Assembly (NCBI GenBank): GCA_002269645.1
Contig: NIVC01002451.1
Coordinates: forward strand, 1-64,000
Source of the DNA: Macrostomum lignano
Taxonomy: Eukaryota
Direction: 5' to 3'
DNA length: 64,000 nucleotides
Of the stretch, positions 2,676 to 64,000 are shown piece by piece. Within the stretch, counting starts at the first letter, position 1. Every line of letters begins with the position of its first letter. Below the pieces are notes generated by a model. That model was not told the DNA's origin, did not search any database, and saw only the letters and a list, made by a program, of their open reading frames with translations. The translations under genes and the position numbers were made by a program.

Positions 2676-3222
2676 GTATTATTCACGAAAAGGCTCGCGC
2701 ACGCAATCCTGGCATCATTCAAACCAAATTCAAGCCAGCTCGGCCTAGTCCATTATTTCTATGTTTTGTTTTTTTAAAGCGTAGGCATTTTCCTAGGATT
2801 GAAACTAATCTTAATTAGAATGCTTTATTGTGTGTCTGTCGCATCACTGTTGCGCCCAGCATATGCCACTGGAGAGGCATAGAGTTTATTTATATCTCTG
2901 TCTATGCTTAGTTCAGCTGCGTGAGACTGACTGCATTATTGTATATCGCTATTTTTCATTTCCAACACGTTTATGCCATGCGGTGTGCAATTCTAATGCA
3001 TCTCTCGCCCCCCCCCTGTCACTCATTACAGCAAACTGCCTTATAAGACTATTTACATGTATTGTCTGTCCATCTCTCTCTCTCGGTTGCTTGTGATAAG
3101 CTTCTAATTTTATTAGTTTGGTTTGTTGTTTGTTTGTTGTGTCTGAAGCTGGATTCTACCTGTGCTTGTGTTTGAGCATCTTAGCTGTTATCGAATATTA
3201 GATCGTTATTTTGAAATGCAGA

Positions 3223-3612
3223 GATCTCATATCCAGGGCTTGAGATCTCCCGGAGGTTAAGAGAAGAGAGATCTCATGAGTGAGATTCTACCGAAGTAGA
3301 GAGATCTCATGGGAGAGATTCTACCGAAGTAGAGAGATCTCATGGGAGAGATTCTACCGAAGAAGAGAGATCTCATGGGAGAGCTTCTGCCGAAGTAGAG
3401 AGATCTCATGGGAGAGCTTCTGCCGAAGAAGAGAGATCTCATGGGAGAGATCCAACCGAAGCAGAGATATCTCATGAGTGAGATTCTACCGAAGTAGAGA
3501 GATCTCATGGGAGAGATTCTGCCGAAGTAGAGAGATCTCATGGGAGAGATTCTGCCGAAGTAGAGAGATCTCATGGGAGAGATTCTGCCGAAGTAGAGAG
3601 ATCTCATGGGAG
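3223..3612. repeat. Minisatellite, 33-bp unit GAGAGATCTCATGGGAGAGATTCTRCCGAAGTA
   Basis: About 11 tandem copies; source of the RFYRSREISWE pseudo-ORFs. Confidence 0.95.
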
Positions 3613-3647
3613 AGGTTCTTCCTAAGTTTTAGGGAAGATACTTATCA

Positions 3648-3650
<3 letters not shown>

Positions 3651-3729
<79 letters not shown>
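3651..3729. repeat. (AG)n microsatellite
   Basis: Pure AG run. Confidence 0.99.
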
Positions 3730-7413: not shown

Positions 7414-7563
7414 TTCGATGCAGGTTTTGTCAGGACACTGCTTAAAAAAAAACTGGCTGGCTTGGGTGGACGGAGAAGTGTCGTGCGAGCGTTTTAAAGG
7501 TTTAATAAATTCAACTCTTCTTAAGAATTTAAAAGCCCGCCGTTGTAGTCAATGGTTTCGTTG

Positions 7564-7595
7564 GTTGCTATTCGGTACAAGAATATGCGTTGCTA
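7564..7595 (-). promoter_or_regulatory. Two RFX half-site-like TAGCAAC motifs 150-180 bp upstream of the CFAP20 ATG
   Basis: GTTGCTA at 7564-7570 and 7589-7595. Ciliary genes are commonly RFX targets, but there is no full X-box match. Confidence 0.25.
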
Positions 7596-10216
7596 CATAA
7601 AGTAGTTCTAATCGAAATATCAAAAAGTTTAGCTACACTTTATAGCTTTTATCCACAAATTTTGCATTTTTATATTACATAGTAAGGTGAACTGTTGTCT
7701 TAGCGCTTTTACGCTTTAAAAATGTATACATTTTTATTTTAATGCACCCAATTAAAACGGTAATTATTCCGGAAGTCTTATAATTAATGAAAAAATGCAA
7801 AAGCAAGGGATCGATCCTCATGGCAAAATTTAGAATAGAACAGCATGCTGCTTTTTGTACTTTTAGTAGTGCACCTAATTCTTCCTAAATGAAGTAGGCT
7901 TAGAATTACAAACTTGGATGTTGACTTTAACCGCTTTAAAAGTTTTAAAGATTTCAAAAAGGAGTACAAAAGCTGTACATAGGACGACACTCATAGGATG
8001 TCAGAAAGACTTATGTAGGCTACAGTGTATTTCTCTCCTGAAAGTACAGTATATGTATTGGCGACGTCTATAGCTTTTAATTGTCTCTTAACAGTTATAG
8101 TTCTATTACTGTTCGTCCTTGGTTTTTTTCCCCCAAATCGCGGCTAATTTTAAATACCAAATAGAACTACTTACAGATTATCTGTACATGTACTTTCCAT
8201 GCACACATACTTTTGTCAATATTAAAGTTCAAAGAATATTTAAACATAGAATTTTTAAATTACAAGACAAATTACATGTACATGTAGCCTGAAAACGCAA
8301 CTCTTAGAATTAGAGTTCGCTGATCGATCTCTGGCATGCACATGTACCTGCATGCAATATTTTTGTGTTTTTGTTGTTTCCAGATCAAGAGCTAGCGTTG
8401 TCACCGGGGTGCAGTGAGGGGCATGTCCACCAAGTTAAAGCTGTGGGGGGGGGGGGCACGCAAATGCAGCCCCCCCTACTTTGTGACAGTCTCAAGGTTT
8501 TAACAGCTTAATGACCAAAAACATTTAAAACCTTGTACAGATTTGGAATCCTGAATTTTTCTCAGGTCATCCAACAAAGGACTGCCTACGGTGCTGAAAT
8601 GAGAGTCTGCGGCGTTTATAGCGATTGAGCCGGCGGCGCCAAAATGAGTATTAGATGCTGTTATCTCATGGTCGCTTGTGGCACCAAATTAGTACATGTA
8701 CATATACTTAACAATTCACTGGTTATTGTGTCCCCCGCCATAAAACATTTAAATGGATCACATGTAACAGCGCACCTGTTCCACATTCGGGCATGAATTG
8801 AGATTTTTGTTTCGAGTTTTAGATCGAAAAAGATATCGAAAAGGGGGAGAAAAGAGCTAAAATTGCTACTGCCATTCCTTGGATGTTGCGTACACAATAT
8901 GTCGATTGCTAATGGACGTCACACAGGGGAGAAATGTAATAACATTTACATGTTAAGAGAAAAGCGAAGATTTCGTGTGCAGAATTTACATATATGTACT
9001 GCTGGTTTAAAAAATCTGAAACTTTGAGAGAAGGTCTTAGGCCTAAAAAAAGGTAACACAAGAGTTGTGTGTATGTACGAGCGTACTATATACAATGCCG
9101 TGTAAAACGCAAATTGTGAAAATTTCCAAAATTTTAAAGCAAGATGTCTTCCTGCTCCCATGGCCTCAATGTTCAATGCATGCGGCTGGCTGCAGGACCC
9201 GGCCCAGTCCTGCCTCTCCGCTCAAGTACCACTGTATTATGTATACGTCTGTATATACACTGTATATGTGAGACACAGTATATATGAGACACTGTACGTA
9301 TATACAGTTGTCTTTGTCTCCGCTTTCCTCCAATCGAAAACTATAGAAAAGAAATTTGTTTACCAGTATAAGTCAATGCAGTACAGCTACTTACAGTAGA
9401 GCTATTTGCGCATTTTTTTGCCAATCGTTCAATAGTGTAAATAAATTGTTTAAAATTAAAAGTGGATTTGACAAAAATAATATGTTTTACCACTTCATAG
9501 TAAAATACAAAACTTTTTGAGTATTACCGGTCTGTTTCTGTACGAGATTTACGGATTGTGCAGAATTAATTCAAGTTTAGTGAGCCTGATTGTAGGCGCT
9601 ACGAAAACGAAGGTTTTTGACTTGTGTGTGGCCCAGTTATGTAAAAAAATTAGGCTTGATTAATGATTTCTTTATCGCTTCTCGGCCTTATTGGCTAAGA
9701 TCAAAGTGTAGTTTCTGTTCTTTAGAGATTAATTCCTCTAACGTAGGCCATTGGTCTACTAAGTAATTAATCCGGTTTTTGATGAGTCGGGCCAGTGCTT
9801 CGTGTTCACACGACCTGGTCCACGCGTAGGCCTTGCGCTGCAGTACAGCAAGGATCTGCGCATCTAATAAATTTAAAATAATGAAGGTTGGATATACAAA
9901 GCCTTTCATTGAATCAAGGCCAGTAAATTTGAAGCTTTGCGGAAAGTCGTATTAAAGTTTGAAACTGCACTAGGTCAGTCAGCTAGTCATTCATACAGCT
10001 AGCTAGAGAAAGTCAGTTTCTTGCTCTCGAATTGAGTCTGAGTTATATGGATGGACAATGGCAATTGACAATGTATAGCTTGCTTTTGACCGGGAGAACC
10101 TACAATGCATGCGTATAAAATCAGACACTTTAAACTGCTATTTGATTGCATTTATAGTGAGTATAGTCCGAGAGGTATCAACACTCATGCTTGTTAAACG
10201 TCTCTTGAGAATGAGA

Positions 10217-10873: not shown

Positions 10874-11632
10874 GGCTAACCACAATGGCTCGACAGCAGT
10901 ATAAAGCTTTCAATGGCATCAATCAATCAGCCTTCTCTTCCTTTATGCATATTTTGCTACAACAAATATTCACCTCATCAGCGCTGCGGTCTCCTGGGCC
11001 CCCGCGGCCGCCGCCGACTCTCAATGCACGCAGGTCCTCGCTTAATTTGTATGGAAATTCAAATTGGGCCGTGGGACCCGCGGGGCCACAGGTCAGCAGC
11101 CCCGGCAGCCGCTGACCCCTTGACCCCTGCGACTTCTCAAGCGGGATCTCTGGTGGGGACTCAGCATCCCGGGGTCGGTTCGTGCGTGCTTTTTCTTCCA
11201 ACAGTGAAATTCAATTTTCAGGGGCGGGAGCAAAGGGAAGGAGAGTGCTTTTGAAGATTCCCCGCTTCCCTTCTCTGGCTGATCCCATGGGAGGAGTTCA
11301 TTCGAGCCAGCGCTGCGGGTTGGGAAAAGCGAAAGTTGGGCTAAAAATGATTTAACAGCAACGAGAGGAGGCTGGCTCTGCATCGATACAGTAGCGATTG
11401 AGGTGGAGGAGAATTGTGTAACTACTCCAGTTCTTAGGGAGAAATATCCCCAAGAGACAAGTTTCCCGCATTAAGTGAGTGAAGGGGGAAGAATTGGAAA
11501 CGAAAAATTTGCTTAGGAATTGAAAACATTCCTGCGAGAGCTTTCACTGAGAGTGGATGCCTTCGCAAATGGATTCGTCAGGGGCGCTTGGGGTGGCCGA
11601 TCTAGCGATTTGATAGATATCTCTGAGGCATG

Positions 11633-13552
<1,920 letters not shown>

Positions 13553-14296: not shown

Positions 14297-14784
14297 CTAG
14301 GGCAGAACCGGCCTGCAGACTCTGCGCCCGTCGCCAAGGCAGTTGAAGGCGTCGGCGAATCCCGGGAGTCGCGCCAGCAGGCGGCCGACGCGGTCAGGCA
14401 GCGGCCCCGCCCGGCCCCACCGGTGCCCCGGCACCGCCTTCTGGCAGTACAGCTGGCTGACCGACACGAAGAATTCCCGCCTGGCTGCTGGAAATGCCGG
14501 TGATGTCGGAGATGTCATTCTCAGCGCCGCGGCGGCCGCGGTGAACTCGACGAAGTCTCGACGGACGGTTGCCGTCTCGGCGTCCAGACAGTCGGCAGCT
14601 GAGCGGTTCAGGGCGGCTGGCGGCGCCTGGGCGGCGGCCCGGCTGGCCAGCTCGTAGGCCAGCAGGAAGTCGAGCTGGCGCGGCCGCGGCAGCAGCGCCG
14701 GCAAGTAGAAGGCCAGCGGATACGGGAACCGGCGCCCCTGGTCGTCGAGGGCGTCACGGAAGAATCGCGGCGGCAAAGGCGGCG
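14297..14784 (-). pseudogene. Duplicated 3' fragment (~160 codons) of the M13-like gene; fused at the junction to an in-frame ATG at 14821
   Basis: Same sequence as 20114-20600 apart from one extra C; reads ...REFFVSVSQLYCQ...RVGRLLARLPGFADAFNCLGDGRRVCRPVLP*. Confidence 0.85.
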
Positions 14785-15173
14785 TAGGCCTTGCGCTGCA
14801 GTACAGCAAGGATCTGCGCATCTAATAAATTTAAAATAATGAAGGTCGGACTTACAAAGCCTTTCATTGAATCAAGGCCAGTAAATTTGAAGCTTTGCGG
14901 AAAGTCGTATTAAAGTTTGAAACTGCACTAGGTCAGTCAGCTAGTCATCCATACAGCTAGCTAGAGAAAGTCAGTTTCTTGCTCTCGAATTGAGTCTGAG
15001 TTATATGGATGGACAATGGCAATTGACAATGTATAGCTTGCTTTTGACCGGGAGAACCTACAATGCATGCATATAAAATCAGACACTTTAAACTGCTATT
15101 TGATTGCATTTATAGTGAGTATAGTCCGAGAGGTATCAACACTCATGCTTGTTAAACGTCTCTTGAGAATGAG

Positions 15174-15856: not shown

Positions 15857-16615
15857 GGCTAACCACAATGGCTCGACAGCAGTATAAAGCTTTCAATGGC
15901 AGCAATCAATCAGCCTTCTCTTCCTTTATGCATATTTTGCTACAACAAATATTCACCTCATCAGCGCTGCGGTCTCCTGGGCCCCCGCGGCCGCCGCCGA
16001 CTCTCAATGCACGCAGGTCCTCGCTTAATTTGTATGGAAATTCAAATTGGCCCGTGGGACCCCGCGGGGCCACAGGTCAGCAGCCCCGGCAGCCGCTGAC
16101 CCCTTGACCCCTGCGACTTCTCAAGCGGGATCTCTGGTGGGGACTCAGCATCCCGGGGTCGGTTCGTGCGTGCTTTTTCTTCCAACAGTGAAATTCAATT
16201 TTCAGGGGCGGGAGCAAAGGGAAGGAGAGTGCTTTTGAAGATTCCCCGCTTCCCTTCTCCGGCTGATCCCATGGGAGGAGTTCATTCGAGCCAGCGCTGC
16301 GGGTTGGGAAAAGCGAAAGTTGGGCTAAAAATGATTTAACAGCAACGAGAGGAGGCTGGCTCTGCATCGATACAGTAGCGATTGAGGTGGAGGAGAATTG
16401 TGTAACTACTCCAGTTCTTAGGGAGAAATATCCCCAAGAGACAAGTTTCCCGCATTAAGTGAGTGAAGGGGAAGAATTGGAAACGAAAAATTTGCTTAGG
16501 AATTGAAAACATTCCTGCGAGAGCTTTCACTGAGAGTGGATGCCTTCGCAAATGGATTCGTCAGGGGCGCTTGGGGTGGCCGATCTAGCGATTTGATAGA
16601 TATCTCTGAGGCATG

Positions 16616-19369
<2,754 letters not shown>

Positions 19370-20113
19370 GCAGGCAAAGCTGTGCAGTAGTTGACAACCA
19401 ACTGCAGCCATTGGCATTAGTTTTGCTAGCTATTATATATTTGCACGAACAGCTCACAGTAGCTCAACAAAATTTATTTATTTATAAAATTGGGTCACGT
19501 GATGCAGCAGCAGAGCGGATTACTGAGGGCTAAAATTGGTAACCAAATCGGGGGTAAAAAATTGCAACACTTGGATTAGCGCTGAGAGACAGTTAATTCA
19601 GGTTTGTGGCTAGAAAAGATCCCTGAGGCAAAAATCATGGCTGACAATGAACCTTTGGATTCCAGCATGGATTGCACAGTTGCGCAACCATTGTTTGTCT
19701 GCATGGCTAGCAAAATCTGCTCAGCCTGTGTTTTTGGTCTCAAAGTCAGTTTGGGGAAGAAATTAAGCAACATTTCAATCAAAGGTTGTGTGGATTTACA
19801 GGACAGAAGAGCAAAGGAATTCAACTGTAAAACAGCTGCAATCAGGTGTGTAAAGGGGAGCAACAGCTGACAGACAATGATCATAGCTCGTACAAGAGAG
19901 TTCGGTCTTTGAGACGCAAAAGGCTGAGGACAAGGAAATGTACAAATAAACATTAAAAACTGTTTGTTCAGTAATAAAAAAGTAGAAAACATTAGTGGTG
20001 GAATTGAACACGGCACCTACACAAGTGTTATGCTAATTACTGGTATTATTAAATAGATCGCCAATGCGTGTCCAGCTACTTGCAGTAGCGATAACAGCTC
20101 CTGCAATCCGCCG

Positions 20114-22358
20114 CTAGGGCAGAACCGGCCTGCAGACTCTGCGCCCGTCGCCAAGGCAGTTGAAGGCGTCGGCGAATCCCGGGAGTCGCGCCAGCAGGCG
20201 GCCGACGCGGTCAGGCAGCGGCCCCGCCCGGCCCACCGGTGCCCCGGCACCGCCTTCTGGCAGTACAGCTGGCTGACCGACACGAAGAATTCCCGCCTGG
20301 CTGCTGGAAATGCCGGTGATGTCGGAGATGTCATTCTCAGCGCCGCGGCGGCCGCGGTGAACTCGACGAAGTCTCGACGGACGGTTGCCGTCTCGGCGTC
20401 CAGACAGTCGGCAGCTGAGCGGTTCAGGGCGGCTGGCGGCGCCTGGGCGGCGGCCCGGCTGGCCAGCTCGTAGGCCAGCAGGAAGTCGAGCTGGCGCGGC
20501 CGCGGCAGCAGCGCCGGCAAGTAGAAGGCCAGCGGATACGGGAACCGGCGCCCCTGGTCGTCGAGGGCGTCACGGAAGAATCGCGGCGGCAAAGGCGGCG
20601 CCGGCGTCGGCAGCGGCGGAGCTGCGGAGGCGGCGTGAAAGGCGAGGCGGTGGGCGGACAGGCGGCGGTGACGCAGGGCATCCAGCAGGCCGGGCAGGAA
20701 GGCCGCATCGGCTGGCAGGCGGAGGTCGCCGTACAGGTTCAGCAGCTGCTCCTCGCCACCGAGGCCGCCGAAGTCAGTCGGCAGTCCAGGACCGGAACTT
20801 CGGGACGGCCGGCCAGGCGAGGGTCGCCGCCGGTCTCAGCCAGCAGCGCCGCCCTGGCCGCCTCTGTCCGGTCGGCGGCAAGCCGCAGCGGCCCGGCCCC
20901 GGGGCTGAGGTGTCTGGCAGCGAAGGTCGCTAGCAGAGCGTCGGGGAACAGGCGGTGCAGACTGCGCAGGCACCGCTCCGGCCTGTCGCCATCAGCGAAC
21001 CTGTCGGGATGCTCGCCAGCCGGCGCCACCTCCGTCGGCAGAGCGTCGAGCAGCTCGTGGAAGTGCGGCCTGAGCGCCACCAGCGAGTTGACGAACGCGT
21101 AGCCAACCAGCGTGTCCGGGTCCTGCCGGGACGCCAAGTCGAAGAGACGCCGCAGCCGGTCGGGCTGCCTGGCGCAGACCCGGCTGTACTTGCCCTCCGC
21201 CCAGGCTGGCAGGATGAGGCTGCGGAAGCTGGCCCAGCCGGTGGCGCCGTTCGGGAACAAGCCGGCAAGACCGGCGGCGTCCAGCAGGTGGTCCTCCGGG
21301 GCGGCCCGGCTCTCGCCGTCTAGCAGCTGATGCAGCGCCACGTGGTAGGCGGCCATCTTCTCCACGATGAGGTAGGGGACCCCGCGCTTGGCCAAGCGGA
21401 AGGCCGCCTCGACCAGGCGGACCAGGCGGTCCCGGCCGACACCCGCCAGGCCGCGGGTGGCGCCGGCGTCAGGCAGAGCGGCAGCGAGTCAGCCGGAATC
21501 GCTGACCCCGGCACGGGCGATACCAGATCCACCCCGGCTGGCAAGTCGTGCACCAGGAACTGGGCGAGGACCCGCTCCGGGGAGTGCTCGAAGCCCCAGA
21601 CCACCGACTCGGCGCCGAACACTGACATGGGGGTGAAGCGGGTCGGGTCGGAGAAGGCGGAGACCAGCTGGGTGGCGGTGAGGCCGGCCGAGGAGGCGCA
21701 GGCGCGCGTCAGGTTGGCCAGCGCCGCCTGCCAGGCCGGGCGCTGGCCGGCGCCGGTGTCAGCAGCGTCTCCAGCAGCGAGTCCCTCAGGCGGAGCTGCA
21801 GCTGCCTGATGGCGCTGGTCTCCCGCTCGACGCCCCGCCCGGTCCAGCGCAGGCTGACGGCGGCGTTGAATCTGCCGCAGGCGGCGGCGTAGAGGCCCCC
21901 GTCGGGGTCGCAGACGCCAGCCGCTGTCGACGTTGGGTCGGCGAAATCGGCCGCGTCGCCGCTCGCCGACGCCTGCCGCCAGCCGTCGGACGGTGCAGCC
22001 AGCAGCATCGACGAGGACGCGGCAGGGGAGAATCGCCGCCTGGCGCTGCCGCCGCGGCCGCAGTCGCCGGAGTTGGCGCCGAAGGCTGTCAGGGCGGTGC
22101 GGCCGTCCAAGAAGAAATAGAACAGGCAGAGTACGGCAAACCCGGCGGCCAGGAGAGTCAACAGGCCGGCCAGCACGCAGGTGGTGGCGCGGCAGCGGCC
22201 GCCCTGAAGTCGCCGACCGCAGCAGCCGGTGGATTTGGTCGCGGCCTCAGCATCCGAAGCCGCAGATGACGAGGCGGCGGAGTTGGCAGCGGTGGCTCCA
22301 GACGAGGCGGCGGGATCAGAGATTCGTCCTTGCCAGCTGTACCGTTGGACGTTGTCAT
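20114..22358 (-). CDS. Neprilysin/endothelin-converting-enzyme (peptidase M13) family type II membrane protein, ~749 aa, apparently single coding exon, zinc motif degenerate; 5 apparent single-base frameshifts
   Basis: Short N-terminus, TM helix CVLAGLLTLLAAGFAVLCLFYFF, M13 N-motif GVCDPDGGLYAAACGRF (cf. DPCxDFYxYACGxW). C-terminal motifs LDFLLAYELASRA (cf. IGHEITHGF), REFFVSVSQLYC (cf. QLFFLNFAQVWC) and LPGFADAFNC (cf. EFSEAFHC). Frame switches near 22321, 21750, 21470, ~20780 and 20232; 2245+5=2250 nt =750 codons. Acceptor-like TTCTTTTGCAG ends at 22418, upstream of the ATG. Confidence 0.8.
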
Positions 22359-38404: not shown

Positions 38405-39780
38405 GCTATAGAATCTTCACAAACTATGGAATCTTCACAAACTATAGAATCTTCACAAACTATGGAATCTTCACAAACTATAGAATCTTCACAAACTATG
38501 GAATCTTCACAAACTATAGAATCTTCACAAACTATGGAATCTTCACAAACTATGGAATCTTCACAAACTATGGAATCTTCACAGACTATGGAATCTTCAC
38601 AAACTATAGAATCTTCACAAACTATAGAATCTTCACAAACTATGGAATCTTCACAAACTATGGAATCTTCACAAACTATGGAATCTTCACAAACTATGGA
38701 ATCTTCACAAACTATAGAATCTTCACAAACTATGGAATCTTCACAAACTATGGAATCTTCACAAACTATAGAATCTTCACAAACTATAGAATCTTCACAA
38801 ACTATGGAATCTTCACAAACTATGGAATCTTCACAAACTATGGAATCTTCACAAACTATGGAATCTTCACAAACTATAGAATCTTCACAAACTATGGAAT
38901 CTTCACAAACTATGGAATCTTCACAAACTATAGAATCTTCACAAACTATAGAATTTTCACAAACTATGGAATCTTCACAAACTATGGAATCTTCACAAAC
39001 TATGGAATCTTCACAAACTATGGAATCTTCACAAACTATGGAATCTTCACAAACTATAGAATCTTCACAAACTATGGAATCTTCACAAACTATAGAATCT
39101 TCACAAACTATGGAATCTTCACAAACTATAGAATCTTCACAAACTATGGAATCTTCACAAACTATGGAATCTTCACAAACTATAGAATCTTCACAAACTA
39201 TAGAATCTTCACAAACTATGGAATCTTCACAAACTATGGAATCTTCACAAACTATGGAATCTTCACAAACTATGGAATCTTCACAAACTATAGAATCTTC
39301 ACAAACTATGGAATCTTCACAAACTATACAATCTTCACAAACTATACAATCTTCACAAACTATACAATCTTCACAAACTATATAGAATCTTCACAAACTA
39401 TACAATCTTCACAAACTATAGAATCTTCACAAACTATAGAATCTTCACAAACTATACAATCTTCACAAACTATAGAATCTTCACAAACTATATAGAATCT
39501 TCACAAACTATGGAATCTTCACAAACTATAGAATCTTCACAAACTATAGAATCTTCACAAACTATGGAATCTTCACAAACTATGGAATCTTCACAAACTA
39601 TGGAATCTTCACAAACTATACAATCTTCACAAACTATATACAATCTTCACAAACTATGGAATCTTCACAAACTATACAGTCTTCACAAACTATATACAAT
39701 CTTCACAAACTATAGAATCTTCACAAACTATAGAATCTTCACAAACTATAGAATCTTCACAAACTATAGAATCTTCACAG
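38405..39780. repeat. Minisatellite, 18-bp unit GAATCTTCACAAACTATR
   Basis: About 75 copies; gives the (M/I)ESSQT pseudo-ORF. Confidence 0.98.
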
Positions 39781-40204: not shown

Positions 40205-43200
40205 CGTGCATCAGTATGGTAACACTTTGTCCCACACTGCTACACAAGTATGGTAACACTATCCCACACTGCTGCACCAGTATGGTAGCACTCTGTCCCA
40301 CACTGCTACACAAGTATGGTAACACTCTATCCCACACTGCTGCACCAGTATGGTAGCACTCTGTCCCACACTGCTACACCAGTATGGTAGCACTCTGTCC
40401 CACACTGCTACACCAGTATGGTAGCACTCTGTCCCACACTGCTACACCAGTATGGTAGCACTCTGTCCCACACTGCTACACCAGTATGGTAGCACTCTGT
40501 CCCACACTGCTACACCAGTATGGTAGCACTCTGTCCCACACTGCTACACCAGTATGGTAGCACTCTGTCCCACACTGCTACACCAGTATGGTAGCACTCT
40601 GTCCCACACTGCTACACAAGTATGGTAACACTATCCCACACTGCTGCACCAGTATGGTAGCACTCTGTCCCACACTGCTACACAAGTATGGTAACACTCT
40701 ATCCCACACTGCTGCACCAGTATGGTAGCACTCTGTCCCACACTGCTACACCAGTATGGTAGCACTCTGTCCCACACTGCTACACCAGTATGGTAGCACT
40801 CTGTCCCACACTGCTACACCAGTATGGTAGCACTCTGTCCCACACTGCTACACCAGTATGGTAGCACTCTGTCCCACACTGCTACACCAGTATGGTAGCA
40901 CTCTGTCCCACACTGCTACACCAGTATGGTAGCACTCTGTCCCACACTGCTACACCAGTATGGTAGCACTCTGTCCCACACTGCTACACCAGTATGGTAG
41001 CACTCTGTCCCACACTGCTACACCAGTATGGTAGCACTCTGTCCCACACTGCTACACCAGTATGGTAGCACTCTGTCCCACACTGCTACACCAGTATGGT
41101 AGCACTCTGTCCCACACTGCTACACCAGTATGGTAGCACTCTGTCCCACACTGCTACACAAGTATGGTAACACTATCCCACACTGCTGCACCAGTATGGT
41201 AGCACTCTGTCCCACACTGCTACACAAGTATGGTAACACTCTATCCCACACTGCTGCACCAGTATGGTAGCACTCTGTCCCACACTGCTACACCAGTATG
41301 GTAGCACTCTGTCCCACACTGCTACACCAGTATGGTAGCACTCTGTCCCACACTGCTACACCAGTATGGTAGCACTCTGTCCCACACTGCTACACCAGTA
41401 TGGTAGCACTCTGTCCCACACTGCTACACCAGTATGGTAGCACTCTGTCCCACACTGCTACACCAGTATGGTAGCACTCTGTCCCACACTGCTACACCAG
41501 TATGGTAGCACTCTGTCCCACACTGCTACACCAGTATGGTAACACTCTGTCCCACACTGCTACACCAGTATGGTAGCACTCTGTCCCACACTGCTACACC
41601 AGTATGGTAGCACTCTGTCCCACACTGCTACACCAGTATGGTAGCACTCTGTCCCACACTGCTGCACAAGTAAGTAACACTCTATCCCACACTGCTACAC
41701 CAGTATGGTAACACTCTGTCCCACACTGCTGCACAAGTATGGTAACACTCTATCCCACACTGCTACACCAGTATGGTAACACTCTGTCCCACACTGCTAC
41801 ACCAGTATGGTAACACTCTGTCCCACACTGCTACACCAGTATGGTAGCACTCTGTCCCACACTGCTGCACAAGTATGTAACACTCTATCCCACACTGCTG
41901 CACAAGTATGTAACACTCTGTCCCACACTGCTGCACAAGTATGTAACACTCTGTCCCACACTGCTACACCAGTATGGTAACACTCTGTCCCACACTGCTA
42001 CACCAGTATGGTAGCACTCTGTCCCACACTGCTGCACAAGTATGTAACACTCTATCCCACACTGCTGCACAAGTATGTAACACTCTGTCCCACACTGCTG
42101 CACAAGTATGTAACACTCTGTCCCACACTGCTGCACAAGTATGTAACACTCTGTCCCACACTGCTGCACAAGTATGTAACACTCTATCCCACACTGCTGC
42201 ACAAGTATGTAACACTCTGTCCCACACTGCTGCACAAGTATGTAACACTCTGTCCCACACTGCTGCACAAGTATGTAACACTCTGTCCCACACTGCTGCA
42301 CAAGTATGTAACACTCTGTCCCACACTGCTGCACAAGTATGTAACACTCTATCCCACACTGCTGCACAAGTATGTAACACTCTGTCCCACACTGCTGCAC
42401 AAGTATGTAACACTCTGTCCCACACTGCTGCACAAGTATGTAACACTCTGTCCCACACTGCTGCACAAGTATGTAACACTCTGTCCCACACTGCTGCACA
42501 AGTATGTAACACTCTGTCCCACACTGCTGCACAAGTATGTAACACTCTGTCCCACACTGCTACACCAGTATGTAACACTCTGTCCCACACTGCTGCACAA
42601 GTATGTAACACTCTGTCCCACACTGCTGCACAAGTATGTAACACTCTGTCCCACACTGCTACACAAGTATGTAACACTCTGTCCCACACTGCTGCACAAG
42701 TATGTAACACTCTGTCCCACACTGCTACACCAGTATGGTAACACTCTGTCCCACACTGCTACACCAGTATGGTAGCACTCTGTCCCACACTGCTGCACAA
42801 GTATGTAACACTCTATCCCACACTGCTGCACAAGTATGTAACACTCTGTCCCACACTGCTGCACAAGTATGTAACACTCTGTCCCACACTGCTGCACAAG
42901 TATGTAACACTCTGTCCCACACTGCTGCACAAGTATGTAACACTCTGTCCCACACTGCTACACCAGTATGTAACACTCTGTCCCACACTGCTGCACAAGT
43001 ATGTAACACTCTGTCCCACACTGCTGCACAAGTATGTAACACTCTGTCCCACACTGCTACACCAGTATGTAACACTCTGTCCCACACTGCTGCACAAGTA
43101 TGTAACACTCTGTCCCACACTGCTGCACAAGTATGTAACACTCTATCCCACACTGCTACACCAGTATGGTAACACTCTATCCCACACTGCTGCACAAGTA

Positions 43201-43395
43201 TGTAACACTCTATCCCACACTGCTGCACAAGTATGTAACATTCTATCCCACACTGCTGCACAAGTATGTAACACTCTGTCCCACACTGCTGCACAAGTAT
43301 GTAACACTCTATCCCACACTGCTGCACAAGTATGTAACACTCTGTCCCACACTGCTGCACAAGTATGTAACACTCTATCCCACACTGCTGCACCA
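40205..43395. repeat. 3.2 kb minisatellite with 34-bp (CACTCTGTCCCACACTGCTACACCAGTATGGTAG) and 33-bp (CACTCTGTCCCACACTGCTGCACAAGTATGTAA) variant domains
   Basis: About 95 copies; the 34-mer dominates to ~41650, the 33-mer after ~41870. Confidence 0.98.
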
Positions 43396-55455: not shown

Positions 55456-56204
55456 CTGGGTGAACACTTAAAATCTGGACTTTCCGAGTTACTTTCCGAG
55501 TACTTCCACATGTCCAGCCAAACGATTTCTGGCAACAGCTTCTACTATGCCACTGCACGCGGCGACGCTCCTGTTGAGAAGCGCGTTTCACCTCAAAAAG
55601 AAGTTCGGCGACAAGATCCTGGTGTGGCTGGCCATCAGCAGGCACGGGGCTTCGCGAGTGTACACGTGTCACTCCAAGACGATGAACAAGGAGATGTACG
55701 CAAACGAGTGCATTCGCAAGCGGCTGGTGCCATTTCTCAATGAGCAGCACAGCGATGGCAATTACCTGTTCTGGCCAGATCTGGCCTCCTGCTATTACGC
55801 CAAGGACGTGATCGAGGTGTTCCAGCAGCTGGACATCAACTTTGTCTCGAAGGAGCAGAATCCTTCCTGCGTGCCTCACCTTCGTCCAATCGAGCAATTT
55901 TGGGGCATTTTGAAGCAGCAGGTGTACCATCATAGTTGGCAGGCTCAGACACTTCAGCAGCTGGAGAACAGAATCAAGAAATGCCTGAGGGAGATGGACT
56001 GGTCCGTTGTACATCACATGATGGGACAGGTCAAGTCGCAGATTCGCAGGGCGCGCTGATGGCTTTTAATCGGCTTATTGTTAACTCTATGATGATTACT
56101 GTTTCTTGTTGAATACTTCCCTGTTAAAAAGTTTGATTATCCTGTTTATAACGCCACGAAATATAAACATTTAGAGACGTCCAGATTTTAAGTGTTTACC
56201 CACG
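55456..56204 (+). mobile_element. Internally deleted IS630-Tc1-mariner DNA transposon, DD37E (ITmD37E/mosquito-like), 749 bp
   Basis: TIRs CTGGGTGAACACTTAAAATCTGGAC (55456-55480) and GTCCAGATTTTAAGTGTTTACCCACG (56179-56204), flanked by TA on both sides. Transposase C-half contains KKFGDKILVWLAIS...FWPDLASCYYAK...NPSCVPHLRPIEQFW with 37 residues between D and E. Confidence 0.9.
55510..56059 (+). pseudogene. Truncated DD37E transposase (N-terminal HTH and first Asp missing; one frameshift ~55585)
   Basis: GNSFYYATARGDAPVEKR joins, after removing one base, FHLKKKFGDKILVW...RRAR*. Confidence 0.85.
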
Positions 56205-56728: not shown

Positions 56729-59700
56729 CTATGTAGGCTTAGTTTTCTTTACCAGCGTGGAATTGCCGTACAGTACGTAGCGGAACATATCGCCAAGAGT
56801 GGAATCTACATACTTAATAGTCTCCATATTGTACTGTTTGCCGTGAAATCTGTACCAGAGATGCATAACGTAGTTCTTCTTACGCCAGTCCCATTTCCGC
56901 ACGGGGCCATAGATCAAAGGCAGCTCGCCGCCAGTCCAATTGGGTCGGTCCATGCTCTCCTGCTCGATGTGGCAGTGCTCGGAGTACATGGGGCACAGGG
57001 TGTTGGGATAGGTGACGGAGTGGGCAGCCCATATGCCATCGTCGAGAACCTGGTAGGTGACGTACCACATGCACATGAAGGTGGAGTTGGCCGCGGCCAG
57101 AAAGACGCCGTTGCAGAGTCCGCCGCCCGTCTCCCTGCCGATGGTGAACGGGTAGCGGCGCAGCGGCTCCAGCGGCTTCAATGTGACCACGTCGATGTCG
57201 AAATAGGCGCCGCCAAGTACCAGCACGGCTTCCATGCGGATCACATCGGCCTGGTGCTCCTTCACGCGCATCGGCACCGAATAGGACTGCGGTTGGGGAG
57301 ACGCGGGAGCACTCGGTGTTGGGGTGACCTGCCATTAGCCCTACTCAATAGCGTGCCCATTAGCCCCATTCACTCAATAGCTTGCCCATTAGCCCCATTC
57401 ACTCAATAGCTTGCCCATTAGCCCCATTCACTCAATAGCTTGCCCATTAGCCCTACTCACTCAATAGCTTACCCATTAGCCCTACTCACTCAATAGCTTG
57501 CCCATTAGCCCTATTCACTCAATAGCTTGCCAATTAGCTTCATTCACTCAATAGCTTGCCCATTAGCCCCATTCACTCAATAGCTTGCCCATTAGCCCTA
57601 CTCACTCAGTTACCCTTTCCATTGGCTCCATTCACTCAATAGCTTGCCCATTAGGCCCATTCACTCAATAGCTTGCCCATTAGCCCCATTCACTCAATAG
57701 CTTGCCAATTAGCCCTACTCACTCAGTTACCCTTTCCATTGGCTCCATTCACTCAATAGCTTGCCCATTAGCCCCATTCACTCAATAGCTTGCCCATTAG
57801 CCCCATTCACTCAATAGCTTGCCCATTAGCCCCATTCACTCAATAGCTTGCCCATTAGCCCCATTCACTCAATAGCTTGCCCATTAGCCGAAGGGGGGCC
57901 GTAGCCCAGCGGTAGCGCAGCTGCTCTGGTGTGCCAGCGACCCAGGCTCGATTCCAAGTGCAGCCACATTAATTTGGGGCTGAATTGGAATTTCGGCTTG
58001 GCTCGCTTGTGCAATTAACGGCCTTGAGAGCCAACCCCCCCAAGGCGCAGTGAAGTGTACATGCCTAACAATTGATAAAGTTAGGGCCGCTGTACACTCC
58101 TGTGTGAGTGTGTGCCTGCGTACGTATCCGCGCGCTTGTATGCCTGCTCAGGGGAGTCGGCGGAATGGGCAGTAATGCCTCTCGCCGGTTGTGTGCCTAT
58201 GTCGCTTAAAGTGCGCCAGGGTGCACACAACCCCCCTGCCTCTAATAAAAAAAATTGCCCATTAGCCCTACTCACTCAATAGCTTGCCCATTGGCCCCAT
58301 TCACTCAATAGCTTGCCCATTAGCCCCATTCACTCAATAGCTTGCCAATTAGCCCCACTCACTCAGTTACCCTTTCCATTGGCTCCACTCACTCAGTAGC
58401 CTTTCCATTAGCCCCACTCCCTAGCTTCCCCAAAATCAACTCCATCCACTCAGCAGCTTTCCGTATTAGTGGAATCAGAGGATTTAGGTACGAGTATATC
58501 AATACCTTTGTGGGCACGGGCCGATTAATCATGATAACGTTGCTCTCCCAGATGCCAGAGTCGGTGAGATTCTTCTTAAACGCTTCCCAATGCTCGCCAT
58601 AAGGCTGCTTAGCGTACCAGATAACAGTAAATTTGGGCCGCATCACCCAGACTCCGCTGAGCATACAGACTAGATGATGAAATTGCAGCTGAGGATTCAC
58701 AAACGGCAGTACATAGTGAGCAACATTGGGCACAAGATACGGAGCGGTAGGCTTAGTCATAGCCTGCACTTCGGCAACAGTGTACTGCTTGCCGCTAGGA
58801 GAGTGCAGGCGCCATCCGCTCGTGTCAACAATTGGCAGTTTGTGCACCATCAGCTCGTTGATTCGAGACGCGTATTTGCCGGAGAATGGACGCACTGAGC
58901 TCTTCAGCTTGTCGAATTGGCTAATAATGTAGCTCTTATTCATGGGGGCGTACACGTAGTCTCGGCCGGCCACCTGGTCGGCGACCTTCACCGGCGTTGG
59001 CTTGACAGCAGCAGACGTGGACGAGACGGCAGTTCCTGCCAGAGGTCGGGAAGAGATGAGGGTGATGGTACAGGGTAGCGGGGAATCAAATCTTAGCGAG
59101 TCAAATCTCTGGGGGAGTCAAATCTCACTGAGAGGGATTCAAATCTTTACTGAGAGGGAGTCAAATCTCACAGAGAGGGAGTCAAATCTCACTGAGAGGG
59201 AATCAAATCTCACTGAGAGAGGGAGTCAAATCTCATTGAGAGGGAGTCAAATCTCACAGAGAGGAGTCAAATCTCACAGAGAGGGAGTCAAATCTCACTG
59301 AGAGGGAATCAAATCTCACTGAGAGAGGGAGTCAAATCTCACTGACAGAGGGACTCAAATCTCACTGAGAGGGAGTCAAACCTGACTGAGAGGGAGTCGA
59401 ATCTCACTGATAGGGAGTCAAACCTGACTGAGAGGGAGTCGAATCTCACTGAGAGGGAGTCAAATCTCACAGAGAGGGAGTCAAATCTCACAGAGAGGGA
59501 GTCAAATCTCACTGAGAGAGGGAGTCAAATCTCACAGAGAGGGAGTCAAATCTCACTGAGAGGGATTTAAATCTTTACTGAGAGGGAGTCAAATCTCACT
59601 TAGAGGGAGTCAAATCTCACTGAGAGGGAGTCAAATCTCACTGAGAGGGAGTCAAACCTGACTGAGAGGGAGTCAAATCTCACTGAGAGGAAATCAAATC

Positions 59701-61038
59701 TCATTTTGAAGAAATCAAATCTCACTGAGAGGGAGTCAAATCTCACTGAGAGGGAGTCAAATCTCACTGAAAGGGAGTCAAAGCTCACGAATAGGTAATG
59801 AAATCTCACAGAAGTGAATCAAATAGAAGGAATAAAATCCACTCACGCGCATCAGCAATGGGCTGTATGCTAGAATTGCCAAACAGTATATGCCTAGCGA
59901 TTTGGCCAAAGGCGGAGTTCAACTGTTTAACCGAATTGAAATCAACTGTCAAAGTCGCGCCCGGAGATTGCAGCTCCCGCTGCCTGCGCCACAGGTTAAT
60001 AAGCCAGTTATCTCGCCAGTTCCAAGCGGGCGGAGAGCCGGGCGGCCCGTAGATCAGCCGCAAGCCGGCCGCCTGCCAGCCGGGCTTGTGCATGCCGCCA
60101 ATCTCAATTTTGGCCAAGTGCGGGAAAGCCGATTGCAATGCGAACGGCAGCAGAGTGGAATGCTGATCAGGCAGAGAATCGTCAAGCAGCTGGTAGCACA
60201 GGTGCCAGGCTAGCAGGAATCGAGAGTTTCGCTTAGCCAAGTAAGCGGAGCTGCCAATGCCGCGGTCGTGCTGCAGGCCCAGCACGGTCTCGGCTGAACG
60301 AAGCGCCCGGCTAGCCGGCCGCATGGGCAGCACGTCAGTGTCCAGCCTGAGGCCGCCGAACAGTAGCACAGCCTCCAGGCCGATCAGATCCGATCGATGA
60401 CGCCAAGAGTTGATTGGCATATTGTACACAGATGCTGGAGGCTGGCGACGAGCCAGTACAACTGTGCGCTCCCAGACCGGCTCGGTGACATTGGCAATGA
60501 GATGAGACCAGTAGCCGCCACTCACAGGCTGCTGATGCCATAGAAACACGCGCAGCGGCTTAGCCAGGTGAAATGCGGCCAATAAGCTGAGCAGCTCGTG
60601 AAATTGCAGCTCAGCCCGACGGAATGGCAGCACATAGTGGATAATGTTGGGGGCCAGGCCCGGCTCCGTAGCGTTGGCTATGCTAGTCCGCAGCTGCTCA
60701 TAGTTCAACTGATGGCCTCCGGGTGTCTGCAGTTCAAGTTGACTCAACGTGAGCACGGGCTCCTTGGCGGTGAACAGCTGCTCGGCTAGGCGAGTATTAG
60801 CTCCGGCAAACTGTACAGCCACAGATCGAATAGTTTTCCAATTAGTCAGCGTGAAATTGCGCGCCTCGGACAGTTCAGACGGGCTAGTCCGGCCACCGTA
60901 ATCGTACTCGTACGAGTAGGACAGATTCAAGAATTTGCCAATGTTGCCGCTCCGGCTGGCGTATGCGAGCACCAGAGCGATGGTGACCAAGCATAGGATT
61001 GCCACTGCCCGGCGATAGAGCAGAGCTCGCTGCGTCAT
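56729..61038 (-). CDS. Type II membrane protein with two tandem GT32-like (DxD, Gly_transf_sug/alpha-1,4-glycosyltransferase-like) domains, 759 aa; exons 61038-59847, 59035-58506, 57286-56729
   Basis: Signal-anchor AVAILCLVTIALVLAYA. Domain 1: PNIIHYVLPF...HRSDLIGLEAVLLFGGLRLDTDV...ARHILFG. Domain 2: PNVAHYVLPF...HQADVIRMEAVLVLGGAYFDIDV...FRYVLYG. Donor C|GTGAGT (59847) and acceptor CTGGCAG|GA (59035) are both phase 1; AAG|GTATTG (58506) and CCGCAG|TCC (57286) are both phase 0. 1192+530+558=2280 nt =760 codons, no frameshift. Confidence 0.88.
57330..58415. repeat. Intronic minisatellite, 29-bp unit CCCATTCACTCAATAGCTTGCCCATTAGC, interrupted by a SINE
   Basis: Copies on both sides of 57890-58254. 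Confidence 0.95.
57890..58254 (+). mobile_element. tRNA-derived SINE, 365 bp, antisense in glycosyltransferase intron 2
   Basis: Pol III A-box TAGCCCAGCGG (57902-57912), B-box GGCTCGATTCC (57945-57955), 3' AATAAAAAAAA tail, and a 13-bp direct repeat TTGCCCATTAGCC at 57877-57889 and 58255-58267. The head does not fold into a proper cloverleaf. Confidence 0.85.
59085..59790. repeat. Intronic minisatellite, ~21-bp unit GAGGGAGTCAAATCTCACTGA
   Basis: About 32 copies filling glycosyltransferase intron 1. Confidence 0.96.
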
Positions 61039-61050
61039 TGGCCCCCCAGG

Positions 61051-61100
61051 CTGCGGATGGTCAAGTGCGCGGGCTAATTTGAATGGTTATTAATACTCAC
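61051..61100 (-). other. Probable 50-bp 5'UTR intron of the glycosyltransferase gene
   Basis: GAG|GTGAGTATT...CTTGACCATCCGCAG|CCTGGGGGGCCAATG. After splicing there is an in-frame TAA upstream of the ATG, supporting 61038 as the start. Confidence 0.6.
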
Positions 61101-61671
61101 CTCTTAGAAGACACTAAACTGGCTCTCTTGAGTAAGAGTCGTGTGAAACAAGAGCAGAAAGATGAAGTCTTTGAAGTCGTGAATGATAAAATTCCGGATT
61201 TTGTACAGCCTGCAAGAGAGTCAACAGACCTCCTACCCTCCCTACCTACCTACCCAATGGCAGTCTCTACCAAGGAGGCCCATTGTCTGGGCTAACACCG
61301 ACCCTCAAACTATTGGCGCGTGCACACCCATACACGCACAGCATAGCTACTGGAGAACCCAACCCTATTGGCTGTCGAGCTTGGCCCTAATTGAAGCTAG
61401 CTAAGCATAAAATCATTTTTATAAGTACAGCAGCGCGCAGCAATTCTACCCCTCTTCCCGTTGTGACTATCATCACCAAAAAGGTAATGGAATTGAATTC
61501 TAGCAGCTAGCTTTGACTGAGCCACTTGCCAGACGGGAAAATTCCTATTCAAACACATTAGTATTTGCTTTAATGACGAAGTGCTGGGAGGTTTATTACT
61601 AATAATCAAAAGTACTTTTAAAATTGTTACTTAGAAACTGCCTCAGTTAAATCACTTCAGTAGCTAATCAG

Positions 61672-62595
61672 GAACCATTCTAAGAGGGAATCAGGGATCA
61701 TTCTAAGAGGGAATCAGGGATCATTCTAAGAGGGAATCAGGGATCATTCTAAGAGGGAATCAGGGATCATTCTAAGAGGGAATCAGGGACCATTCTAAGA
61801 GGGAATCAGGGATCATTCTAAGAGGGAATCAGGGACCATTCTAAGAGGGAATCAGGGATCATTCTAAGAGGGAATCAGGGACCATTCTAAGAGGGAATCA
61901 GGGATCATTCTAAGAGGGAATCAGGACCATTCTAAGAGGGAATCAGGGATCATTCTAAGAGGGAATCAGGGATCATTCTAAGAGGGAATCAGGGACCATT
62001 CTAAGAGGGAATCAGGGATCATTCTAAGAGGGAATCAGGGATCATTCTAAGAGGGAATCAGGGATCATTCTAAGAGGGAATCAGGGACCATTCTAAGAGG
62101 GAATCAGGGATCATTCTAAGAGGGAATCAGGACCATTCTAAGAGGGAATCAGGGACCATTCTAAGAGGGAATCAGGGATCATTCTAAGAGGGAATCAGGG
62201 ATCATTCTAAGAGGGAATCAGGGATCATTCTAAGAGGGAATCAGGACCATTCTAAGAGGGAATCAGGGACCATTCTAAGAGGGAATCAGGGATCATTCTA
62301 AGAGGGAATCAGGACCATTCTAAGAGGGAATCAGGGACCATTCTAAGAGGGAATCAGGGACCATTCTAAGAGAGAATCATGAACCATTCCGAGGGAATCA
62401 GGGACCATTCTAAGAGGGAATCAGCATCAGGGACCATTCTAAGAGGGAATCAGCATCAGGGACCATTCTAAGAGGGAATCAGCATCAGGGACCATTCTAA
62501 GAGGGAATCAGCATCAGGGACCATTCTAAGAGGGAATCAGCATCAGGGACCATTCTAAGAGGGAATCAGCATCAGGGACCATTCTAAGAGGGAAT
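61672..62595. repeat. Minisatellite, 23-bp unit ATTCTAAGAGGGAATCAGGGAYC (29-bp variant with CATCAG insert at the right end)
   Basis: About 38 copies. Confidence 0.97.
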
Positions 62596-63349
62596 TAATG
62601 ACTGCTCTAAGAGAGCCGCCGGGAACATTCTAAGAAGAATCAGTGACTCATTTAGAAGGCAATCAGGGAGTCCAAAAGACCCTTCTAAGAGAGAATTCAG
62701 AGACAGTTAGTAATGGATTAGGACAATTTAAACACCACGGTACAAACACTACAACGGCAGAAAATTCTTAGTTGCTCGGAAGCATAAGTGTAAAACTCTC
62801 ACAGGCAGAGTAGAGGTACAGAAAAATTGCTAAGGTGGAATTTTCTAATCGTCTTAGATAGCAGGAGCAGCAGAAGCAGCAGAAAAATGTGTAAGTTATC
62901 CACACAGACCCAATATTTAGTCAGGTTGGAATTTCAGAAACGAGCCAGTCAGTGTTTTGCCCCACCCCAACACCCTAGCAACAGACCTGGGAAGTCACAG
63001 CTGCGAAATATCTGGCAAAAATATCCCCCCATCCACTCTTCTTTCCCTCTCCTCTCTGACGACTCTCCCACACTTGAGAGATCTGATCCCATAGACCCGA
63101 AGCCGGCTTGCTTTCTTGATCCAAGCGGTAGGGCTAGTAAGGAAGGACAGTAGAACAGGGGGGGGTTCCGGCAATATTCAGGGAATTAATACTTGATCTC
63201 CCGTGAACAAAAAAACTGGATGAGTCAACTCTAGGAATTCCTCGCTCTCTTGATAAAAAATGAATTTCTAACTAAGAAGAAATTCCTCACTGACTCAAAC
63301 GGAAATCCCCACTAACTTGGGTGGGAATTTCCCACTAACGCCAAGGGAA

Positions 63350-64000
63350 TTCCTGACTCACGCTGAAGGGGATTCCTGATTCACGCTGAAGAGAATTCCT
63401 CACTCACGCTGAAGAGAATTCCTCACTCACGCTGAAGATAATTCCTCACTCACGCTGAAGAGAATTCCTCACTCACGCTGAAGATAATTCCTCACTCACG
63501 CTGAAGAGAATTCCTCACTCACGCTGAAGAGAATTCCTCACTCACGCTGAAGAGAATTCCTCACTCACGCTGAAGAGAATTCCTCACTCACGCTGAAGAT
63601 AATTCCTCACTCACGCTGAAGAGAATTCCTCACTCACGCTGAAGAGAATTCCTCACTCACGCTGAAGAGAATTCCTCACTCACGCTGAAGAGAATTCCTC
63701 ACTCACGCTGAAGGGAATTCCTCACTCACGCTGAAGAGAATTCCTCACTCACGCTGAAGAGAATTCCTCACTCACGCTGAAGGGAATTCCTCACTCACGC
63801 TGAAGAGAATTCCTCACTCACGCTGAAGAGAATTCCTCACTCACGCTGAAGAGAATTCCTTACTCACGCTGAAGATAATTCCTCACTCACGCTGAAGGGA
63901 ATTCCTCACTCACGCTGAAGAGAATTCCTCACTCACGCTGAAGAGAATTCTTCACTCACGCTGAAGGGAATTCCTCACTCACGCTGAAGAGAATTCCTCA
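63350..64000. repeat. Minisatellite, 23-bp unit CTCACTCACGCTGAAGAGAATTC
   Basis: About 28 copies; runs off the window end. Confidence 0.97.

Follow-up and report, generated by a model that had tools for sequence, protein, structure and literature searches.

A spliced tandem GT32-like glycosyltransferase gene of Macrostomum lignano, with a canonical C-terminal unit and a diverged N-terminal paralog

We analysed 64,000 nucleotides of the flatworm Macrostomum lignano (positions 1 to 64,000, forward strand, of contig NIVC01002451.1, GenBank assembly GCA_002269645.1; hereafter the window) and found that three minus-strand open reading frames (ORFs), at 59806-61038 (410 aa), 58389-58991 and 56729-57277 in the ORF list, are parts of a single gene, neither two nor three, which encodes a 759-aa protein with two glycosyltransferase (GT) units. 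Both units are paralogous GT-A domains related to PF04488 (CAZy GT32-like, of the putative retaining type). With modest confidence, we read the C-terminal unit as the catalytic one, a putative retaining GT32-like transferase, and the N-terminal unit as a degenerate GT-A paralog serving as a structural, spacer or acceptor-binding module. The gene is BOX15_Mlig025082g1 / PAA57727.1 (UniProt A0A1I8JBU2). Its model was reconstructed correctly from the sequence yet was already public, and therefore no hidden gene was discovered here; what is gained is a flatworm example in a metazoan GT32-like family of ~1,800 cluster representatives with recurring tandem forms.

The spliced coding sequence (CDS) amounts to 1192 + 530 + 558 = 2280 nt, or 760 codons with a single terminal stop. 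Its exons and introns, with the protein features that they encode (DXD, the Asp-x-Asp motif; HMM, hidden Markov model), are as follows:

61051..61100, minus strand: candidate intron of the 5' untranslated region (5'UTR), 50 nt, GTGAGT...CCGCAG, adjoining the start codon upstream
59847..61038, minus strand: exon 1, ATG at 61038, codons 1-397 and base 1 of codon 398
60958..61008, minus strand: signal anchor / transmembrane segment, aa 11-27 (AVAILCLVTIALVLAYA), preceded by basic R4, R9 and R10
59863..60756, minus strand: GT-A unit 1, aa 95-392, family HMM 214 bits against 397 bits for unit 2
60334..60342, minus strand: DXD of unit 1, D233-T234-D235
59036..59846, minus strand: intron 1, 811 nt, phase 1, GTGAGT...CTGGCAG
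58506..59035, minus strand: exon 2, last two bases of codon 398 through codon 574
56744-58964 including intron 2, minus strand: GT-A unit 2, aa 422-755
57287..58505, minus strand: intron 2, 1219 nt, phase 0, GTATTG...CCGCAG
56729..57286, minus strand: exon 3, codons 575-759 and the TAG stop (56731-56729), C-terminal half of GT-A unit 2
57191..57199, minus strand: DXD of unit 2, D604-I605-D606

Upon re-reading the sequence and translating the spliced product, we observe that the splice sites, phases and 760-codon count of a first-pass annotation of this DNA hold in all coordinates and in their arithmetic, and that the architecture which it had proposed (transmembrane anchor, stem, GT domain 1, Ser/Thr/Ala/Pro linker, stem, GT domain 2) is borne out. 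Exon 1 carries the cytoplasmic tail, the signal anchor, the stem and GT-A unit 1, whereas exon 2 carries the linker (RTAVSSTSAAVKPTPVKVADQVAGRD), stem-like helices and the N-terminal half of unit 2. The donor of intron 1, GTGAGT at 59846-59841, comes one base after the codons for ...SSIQPIADA and the intron is therefore in phase 1; its acceptor is a pyrimidine-rich tract with a CAG ending at 59036, so that exon 2 begins at 59035. The donor of intron 2 (AAG/GTATTG) follows 58506, and its acceptor CCGCAG ends at 57287, with exon 3 running from 57286. Both introns are mostly satellite: intron 1 is almost entirely a 21-bp minisatellite (59098-59824), and in intron 2 arrays of a 29-bp minisatellite (57343-57889 and 58255-58419) flank a unique core. 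ORFs within intron 1 were considered as coding pieces and rejected, being translations of the satellite, and for a tRNA-like text in intron 2 a tRNA gene was ruled out by ARAGORN and Rfam returned no family at gathering thresholds. An in-frame stop at 59808-59806 lies inside intron 1, and retention of this intron would yield the 410-aa single-domain product. In GenBank the CDS at this locus starts at 61050, immediately past the AG of the 61051-61100 interval that precedes the ATG; this interval may represent a short 5'UTR intron or else a spliced-leader acceptor.

Several observations join the three ORFs into one gene. Both splice junctions are in frame without a stop, and the same junctions and splice sites are found at three loci although the intron lengths differ. 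The frame of exon 2 is closed upstream by a TGA at 59120-59118, 29 codons before the acceptor, with no ATG in between, and no anchor-like ORF is listed in intron 1. This upholds the earlier argument for fusion, which had relied on the second unit having no anchor of its own. A paralog search of the window returned no relic anchor exon and no paralogous pieces besides the three exons. When single-domain paralogs are aligned to the window, homology ends at 58503-58506 and starts again at 57283-57298, and the intronless paralog P0009 aligns continuously over the exon 2/exon 3 junction; splicing of intron 2 thus restores a contiguous domain. A further paralog, Mlig008330 (P0008), has an intron at the site of intron 2 to within 1 nt, as read from translated frames.

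Upon searching a collection of 5.8 billion proteins with a word-indexed method, the spliced protein matched one cluster at 100% identity over 100% of the query, UniRef100_A0A1I8JBU2 ("Nucleotid_trans domain-containing protein", Macrostomum lignano), whose members also include GenBank PAA57727.1, PAA84848.1 and PAA59563.1 and three more UniProt entries; the same search returned no fragment clusters of the 759-aa protein. The product corresponds exactly to residues 5-763 of PAA57727.1 and 6-764 of A0A1I8JBU2, and the extra N-terminal residues of the public entries, (Q)PGGP, are the translation directly upstream of the ATG. The three GenBank proteins map to three contigs of GCA_002269645.1, namely the window locus itself (L003), with exons that are 100% identical, and two homeologous loci (L001 and L002) that are ~99% identical to it. 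Donor and acceptor sequences are identical and the 2280-nt CDS is intact at all three loci, whereas intron 1 measures 811/918/734 nt and intron 2 1219/1232/395 nt (window/L001/L002), differences which reflect satellite copy number. The GenBank annotation combines RNA-seq assemblies (StringTie/TACO) with de novo transcripts mapped to the genome, and its transcriptional units were cut wherever experiments had located spliced-leader and poly(A) sites (PMC5730564). The fused model thus derives from transcripts and is public, and the gene, which the first-pass annotation had called hidden, is not. Full-text literature searches found no paper for the locus tags Mlig025082, Mlig019258 and Mlig026117.

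The predicted protein has the make-up of a type II membrane protein of the secretory pathway or Golgi, with a single uncleaved anchor, a short basic tail and a putative luminal body. The only 19-residue Kyte-Doolittle window above 1.6 in the whole protein is the signal anchor (hydrophobic segment aa 4-31), and the basic residues that precede it indicate type II topology; near the start of unit 2 nothing exceeds 0.5 on the same scale. Ten N-X-S/T sequons are spread across both units, and the linker between them, ~35 residues of Ser, Thr, Ala and Pro, is predicted to be disordered. Aligned with each other, the two units share 30% identity across 334 aa (E 5e-61), a stretch that includes the helical stem before the Rossmann core. 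Unit 2 matches PF04488 at 28.2 bits (cut-off 23 bits), a match that spans only ~39 residues around the DXD (unit residues 182-220), whereas unit 1 has no Pfam match at E<=1 yet shows homology both with unit 2 and with the family HMM. Of the two PF04488 matches in one protein for which the first-pass annotation had proposed to look, the one in unit 2 was found and the one in unit 1 was not. Neither unit, nor the paralog P0009, matches PF04572 (Gb3_synth) at E<=1, and the absence of this tail indicates that the protein is not an A4GALT/A4GNT orthologue, despite the automatic UniProt names of its paralogs.

Structure prediction, which had been proposed as a check, gave confident GT-A models for both units with AlphaFold2 (AF2), each built separately on 13-sequence alignments. 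For unit 2 the mean predicted local distance difference test score (pLDDT) is 88.7 and the predicted TM-score (pTM) 0.86, with the first 28 residues (linker) below 50; for unit 1 the values are 80.4 and 0.79, with an N-terminal helix at residues 3-29. In Foldseek searches of the PDB, both units match retaining GT-A enzymes, among them a GT8 protein and the toxins PaTox, YeGT and SetA, and further UGGT, MNT2, glycogenin, LgtC and yeast Och1 (GT32; 9n3s, E 4e-4 with unit 2 and 1e-3 with unit 1), with modest TM-scores of 0.25-0.5. Against PDB sequences, the family profile reached only the nucleotide-sugar motif of TcdA/TcdB-type toxins (consensus qSDvvRleavlkyGGiYlDlDv) and did not reach Och1; matches to fructose-1,6-bisphosphatase in a single-sequence search with unit 2 were dismissed as chance. 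Given the PF04488 match, the fold matches and the motif spacing, "GT32-like retaining GT-A domain" is a fair label for these units and "A4GALT/A4GNT-like" is not.

We next turn to the active-site residues, which separate the two units. We defined conserved columns by at least 80% conservation in 129 family domains, and a seven-residue signature consisting of D181, R184, Y195, D197, D199, H273 and H306. Unit 2 retains nearly all conserved columns, including the whole signature, whereas unit 1 retains the DXD (as D-T-D), D181, H178 and the GG motif and carries the substitutions P139V, R184G, Y195R, H273K and H306N, leaving it without 4/7 signature residues. The four positions R184, Y195, H273 and H306 are conserved in 86-95% of the 129 domains. 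The motif of unit 2, D-x2-R...Y-F-D-I-D, is canonical; in unit 1 it reads D-x2-G...R-L-D-T-D, with the Asp kept and the Arg and Tyr lost. The family spacing D-x2-R-x10-Y-x-D-x-D equals that of TcdB D270/R273/Y284/D286/D288, listed as essential for Mn2+, uridine diphosphate (UDP) and glucose binding (PMC4690124, a review), and its D, R and D-x-D positions also equal D171/R174/D187/D189 of Och1, residues that form the lining of the donor site jointly with H463 (PMC12312940). R184 is therefore the equivalent of TcdB R273 and Och1 R174, and Y195 that of TcdB Y284.

Divergence between the homeologs also differs along the gene. Against the window copy, exon 1 (1192 nt) shows 12-15 differences (1.0-1.3%), close to the 3' flank taken as reference (19-20 differences per 1234 nt; p 0.28-0.50), whereas exons 2 and 3 together (1088 nt) show 3-4 differences (0.28-0.37%; p 0.002-0.003 against the flank). 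The two parts of the gene differ from each other at p 0.02-0.04, and nonsynonymous and synonymous changes stand at 6-9:4-5 within unit 1 and at 1-2:2 within unit 2. Unit 2 is clearly constrained between homeologs; in unit 1 constraint is undetectable, its divergence being about that of flanking DNA.

For the wider family, phmmer was run exhaustively against 1.84 billion cluster representatives and returned 1,797 proteins at E<=1e-3, most of which are single-domain proteins of 330-420 aa matching unit 2; a word-indexed search with the full protein had seen only its own cluster, and a profile-seeded word search 16 proteins. At least 10 of the top 150 representatives carry 2-3 near-complete domains by the family HMM, and a few more carry partial ones. 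Tandem relatives occur in Branchiostoma (838-840 aa, three domains, several species; XP_035679663.1 / XP_019624544.1), Saccoglossus (594 and 754 aa; XP_006824871.1 and XP_077863513.1), Ptychodera (590 aa; XP_070554338.1) and the abalone Haliotis (LOC124264870), and all are named "uncharacterized". The first-pass annotation had raised the idea of an undescribed enzyme and proposed a search for the same architecture: the architecture does recur in other invertebrates and is not unique to this gene, and RefSeq already holds these two- and three-domain relatives. Full-text searches found no paper describing tandem GT32 proteins and no published study of this metazoan GT32-like family. As a separate observation, XP_066267614.1 (P0018, Branchiostoma lanceolatum, 1388 aa) joins an SLC35A3-like nucleotide-sugar transporter to three GT32-like domains; it may be a transporter and transferase in one polypeptide if real, or alternatively a merged gene model.

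In the deuterostome tandems, the last domains are 49-55% identical across phyla and the first domains ~39%; the domains are thus orthologous by position and the tandem is ancient. Both M. lignano units, by contrast, have M. lignano single-domain paralogs as their nearest relatives (Mlig008330, 026197, 013063 and others) and fall with them in one clade of a distance tree, which indicates that the flatworm fusion is independent and lineage-specific. The 754-aa protein of Saccoglossus and P0012 (ENA; nearest relative in the gastropod Gigantopelta) are independent tandem events too. The full signature is present in 83/109 single-domain relatives and in 7/22 domains of tandem proteins (Fisher p 1e-4), and exactly one canonical domain is found in 7/10 tandem proteins. 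Elsewhere in the M. lignano gene family, the Mlig013063 locus (NIVC01000572.1) shows another local tandem duplication, with a partial upstream duplicate at 3001-3684 (aa 1-202, 88% identity) ~3.7 kb from the full copy at 7365-8675, and UniProt A0A1I8F4W8 (P0007, 918 aa) has a partial and a full GT domain closely resembling Mlig013063 around a reverse-transcriptase insertion.

In the reading that we favour, a single-domain gene would have been duplicated in tandem in the flatworm lineage and the two copies then fused. The stop of copy 1 would be bypassed by a donor 13 codons upstream, which splices into copy 2 downstream of its former anchor; copy 2 would have lost that anchor, the former anchor region being now a satellite-filled intron. 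The protein would reside in a membrane of the Golgi or secretory pathway with both domains luminal. Unit 2 would be a working, Mn2+/DXD-dependent retaining GT that takes a sugar from a nucleotide-sugar donor and places it in alpha linkage on a glycan acceptor, whereas the donor pocket of unit 1 appears remodelled and most likely no longer catalyses the ancestral reaction. Unit 1 may instead act as a structural, spacer or acceptor-binding module, like the N-terminal GT-A domains of B3GLCT and COLGALT1. The residue losses of unit 1, its missing Pfam match, its relaxed divergence and the family-wide pattern of one canonical domain are all consistent with such a pseudo-domain.

Some points weigh against this reading. 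The support of the junctions by transcripts is inherited from the annotation pipeline, the comparison of rates rests on 3-20 substitutions in three copies that are not independent, and H306 is equated with H463 of Och1 solely by its location close to the C-terminus, rather than by a residue-level structural alignment. Unit 1 also keeps its DXD, D181, H178 and GG motif, a confident GT-A fold and an ORF intact in three copies, so that its activity may be altered rather than lost. Moreover, GT1 of COLGALT1 is non-catalytic yet binds metal and UDP-sugar, and for this reason sequence by itself cannot decide the matter.

The strongest alternative, though in our view an unlikely one, is a bifunctional or processive synthase, as the first-pass annotation had suggested, with both GT-A domains active on different donors or acceptors and building a repeating or extended alpha-linked glycan, which that annotation conjecturally linked to mucus or adhesive glycoconjugates. 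The DXD, the Asp ahead of it and the GG motif are indeed present in both units, each of which is modelled as a GT-A fold, and the ancient, position-orthologous deuterostome tandem implies that partner domains have been retained for hundreds of millions of years. The changes of Arg to Gly and Tyr to Arg in unit 1, with Thr as the middle residue of its DXD, could furthermore retune sugar specificity. On the other hand, the signature residues that unit 1 lacks include equivalents of TcdB-essential residues and of Och1 R174, exon 1 is under no detectable constraint between homeologs, the match of unit 1 to Pfam is below threshold, and the recurrent pattern is one canonical domain with degenerate partners; the suggestion thus appears speculative, with the evidence leaning the other way. 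The known animal polymerases (LARGE, EXT, CHSY) pair different GT families and not diverged paralogs.

A doubtful possibility is that unit 1 is inert cargo, supplying only the anchor and a long stalk while its GT-A body drifts neutrally towards decay. The flank-like divergence of exon 1, a nonsynonymous to synonymous ratio near the neutral expectation, the missing Pfam match and an AF2 confidence below that of unit 2 would all agree with it. However, at no more than 30-37% identity to any of its paralogs unit 1 still has a 397-codon ORF, a confident GT-A fold and most structural-core residues intact, which argues for long-term purifying selection since the duplication, and among the deuterostome tandems conservation of the partner domains extends across phyla. 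Finally, it is very improbable that the fused model is an annotation artefact, in which two adjacent genes or a polycistronic precursor give a 410-aa protein and unit 2 from separate transcripts, with rare read-through or a mis-assembled transcript producing the fused CDS: ~7% of the transcriptional units in M. lignano are polycistronic, their precursors being resolved by spliced-leader trans-splicing (PMC5730564), and an mRNA retaining intron 1 would encode a complete single-domain protein, but both junctions are in frame, unit 2 lacks an ATG-led anchor and has the TGA at 59120-59118 upstream, the WormBase ParaSite/UniProt models, the independent GenBank Mlig_3_7 annotation and the three loci agree on the junction, the TBONE pipeline would have cut at any detected spliced-leader site, and no AATAAA follows the 59806 stop.

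Beyond the degenerate-partner reading itself, we can conceive of two bolder proposals, which taken jointly seem to us rather unlikely: (1) that unit 1 has been retuned, making the protein a two-step or processive alpha-glycan synthase peculiar to macrostomid flatworms, and (2) that in this family a degenerate GT-A paralog generally serves as an acceptor-recognition module. With the same low joint credence, GT32-like tandems with exactly one canonical domain may have had at least 3-4 separate origins in metazoa, which would point to a general principle. M. lignano is a practical system in which to test such ideas, because RNA interference, in situ hybridisation and transgenesis exist for it.

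Other features of the window were also recorded. A DDE_3 (Tc1/mariner-type) transposase remnant lies at 55547-56059 on the plus strand (30.6 bits, cut-off 28.6 bits), ~700 bp beyond the stop codon of the glycosyltransferase gene. The window is extremely dense in minisatellites of 15-53 bp and in tetranucleotide arrays, with more than 30 arrays scoring above 400; examples are 40212-43395, 38406-39779, 61666-62595 and 63325-64000, and a run of N at ~28.4-28.6 kb, which reads as X in the ORF translations, marks an assembly gap inside a satellite block. The remaining features are:

5845-6450, minus strand: ORF in which a CFAP20 exon is highly conserved (Pfam CFA20_dom, 102 bits), placing a gene for cilia/flagella-associated protein 20 near the window start
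9674-9868, plus strand: complete U2 spliceosomal small nuclear RNA gene (Rfam RF00004, 143 bits, model positions 1-192 of 192)
14297-14821 and 20017-20592, minus strand: ORFs ~5.7 kb apart encoding nearly identical protein, which suggests a segmental duplication
11631-13544 and 16614-19361: long (TGTC)n arrays near the duplicated ORFs
20739-21395, minus strand: neighbouring ORF with a sub-threshold Peptidase_M13_N match (20.7 bits against a 32-bit cut-off)

When comparing the protein with known systems, LARGE1/2, EXT1/2 and the chondroitin synthases resemble it in placing two GT domains in one Golgi type II protein. Each of them unites two distinct GT families whose activities complement each other, has both of its sites intact and makes an alternating polymer, whereas here two paralogous domains of one family are joined, one of them with a damaged donor site; the analogy to LARGE and EXT that had first been drawn is for this reason weak, and B3GLCT and COLGALT1 are closer. 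The clostridial and related glucosylating toxins (TcdA/TcdB of GT44, PaTox, YeGT and SetA) are the best sequence-profile and fold matches among solved structures and share the motif SD-x2-R-x8-GG-x-Y-x-D-x-D with the family; the likeness does not extend beyond the nucleotide-sugar site and the core of the GT-A fold, no toxin architecture is present, and they serve only as a reference for residue function.

The GT32/PF04488 enzymes (Och1, Sur1/Csh1, A4GALT, A4GNT and Cryptococcus Cgm1) have the type II topology and GT-A fold in common with this protein. Unit 2 is further like Och1 in the D-x2-R that precedes the DXD at the spacing of D171/R174/D187/D189, and like retaining enzymes in the aliphatic middle residue of its DXD, which is typical of them. 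The protein differs in having two domains rather than one and no PF04572 tail, and the fold similarity is modest. The uncharacterised tandems of Branchiostoma, Saccoglossus, Ptychodera and Haliotis share the arrangement of one domain repeated 2-3x behind a single anchor, usually one canonical domain with divergent partners that lack the conserved Arg and/or His, whereas the M. lignano fusion differs from the deuterostome tandems in being of independent origin.

The closest parallels are B3GLCT (GT31) and COLGALT1/GLT25D1 (GT25), animal secretory-pathway proteins with two GT-A domains, of which the N-terminal one is a non-catalytic diverged copy and the C-terminal one is catalytic. The extra N-terminal domain of B3GLCT is essential for acceptor binding and binds neither UDP nor Mn2+ (PMC13597200), whereas in COLGALT1 GT1 binds Ca2+ and UDP-galactose for stability and only GT2 is catalytic (PMC12003778), so that the role of the N-terminal domain is acceptor binding in the former and folding in the latter. 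Both belong to other GT families and are inverting, soluble proteins of the endoplasmic reticulum, whereas the M. lignano protein is predicted to be an anchored type II protein; N-terminal inactivity has been shown by experiment for B3GLCT and COLGALT1, where recent crystal structures revealed the non-catalytic partner domain, while we infer it here. If true, pseudo-glycosyltransferase partner domains would be a recurrent evolutionary solution, reaching beyond these two isolated cases.

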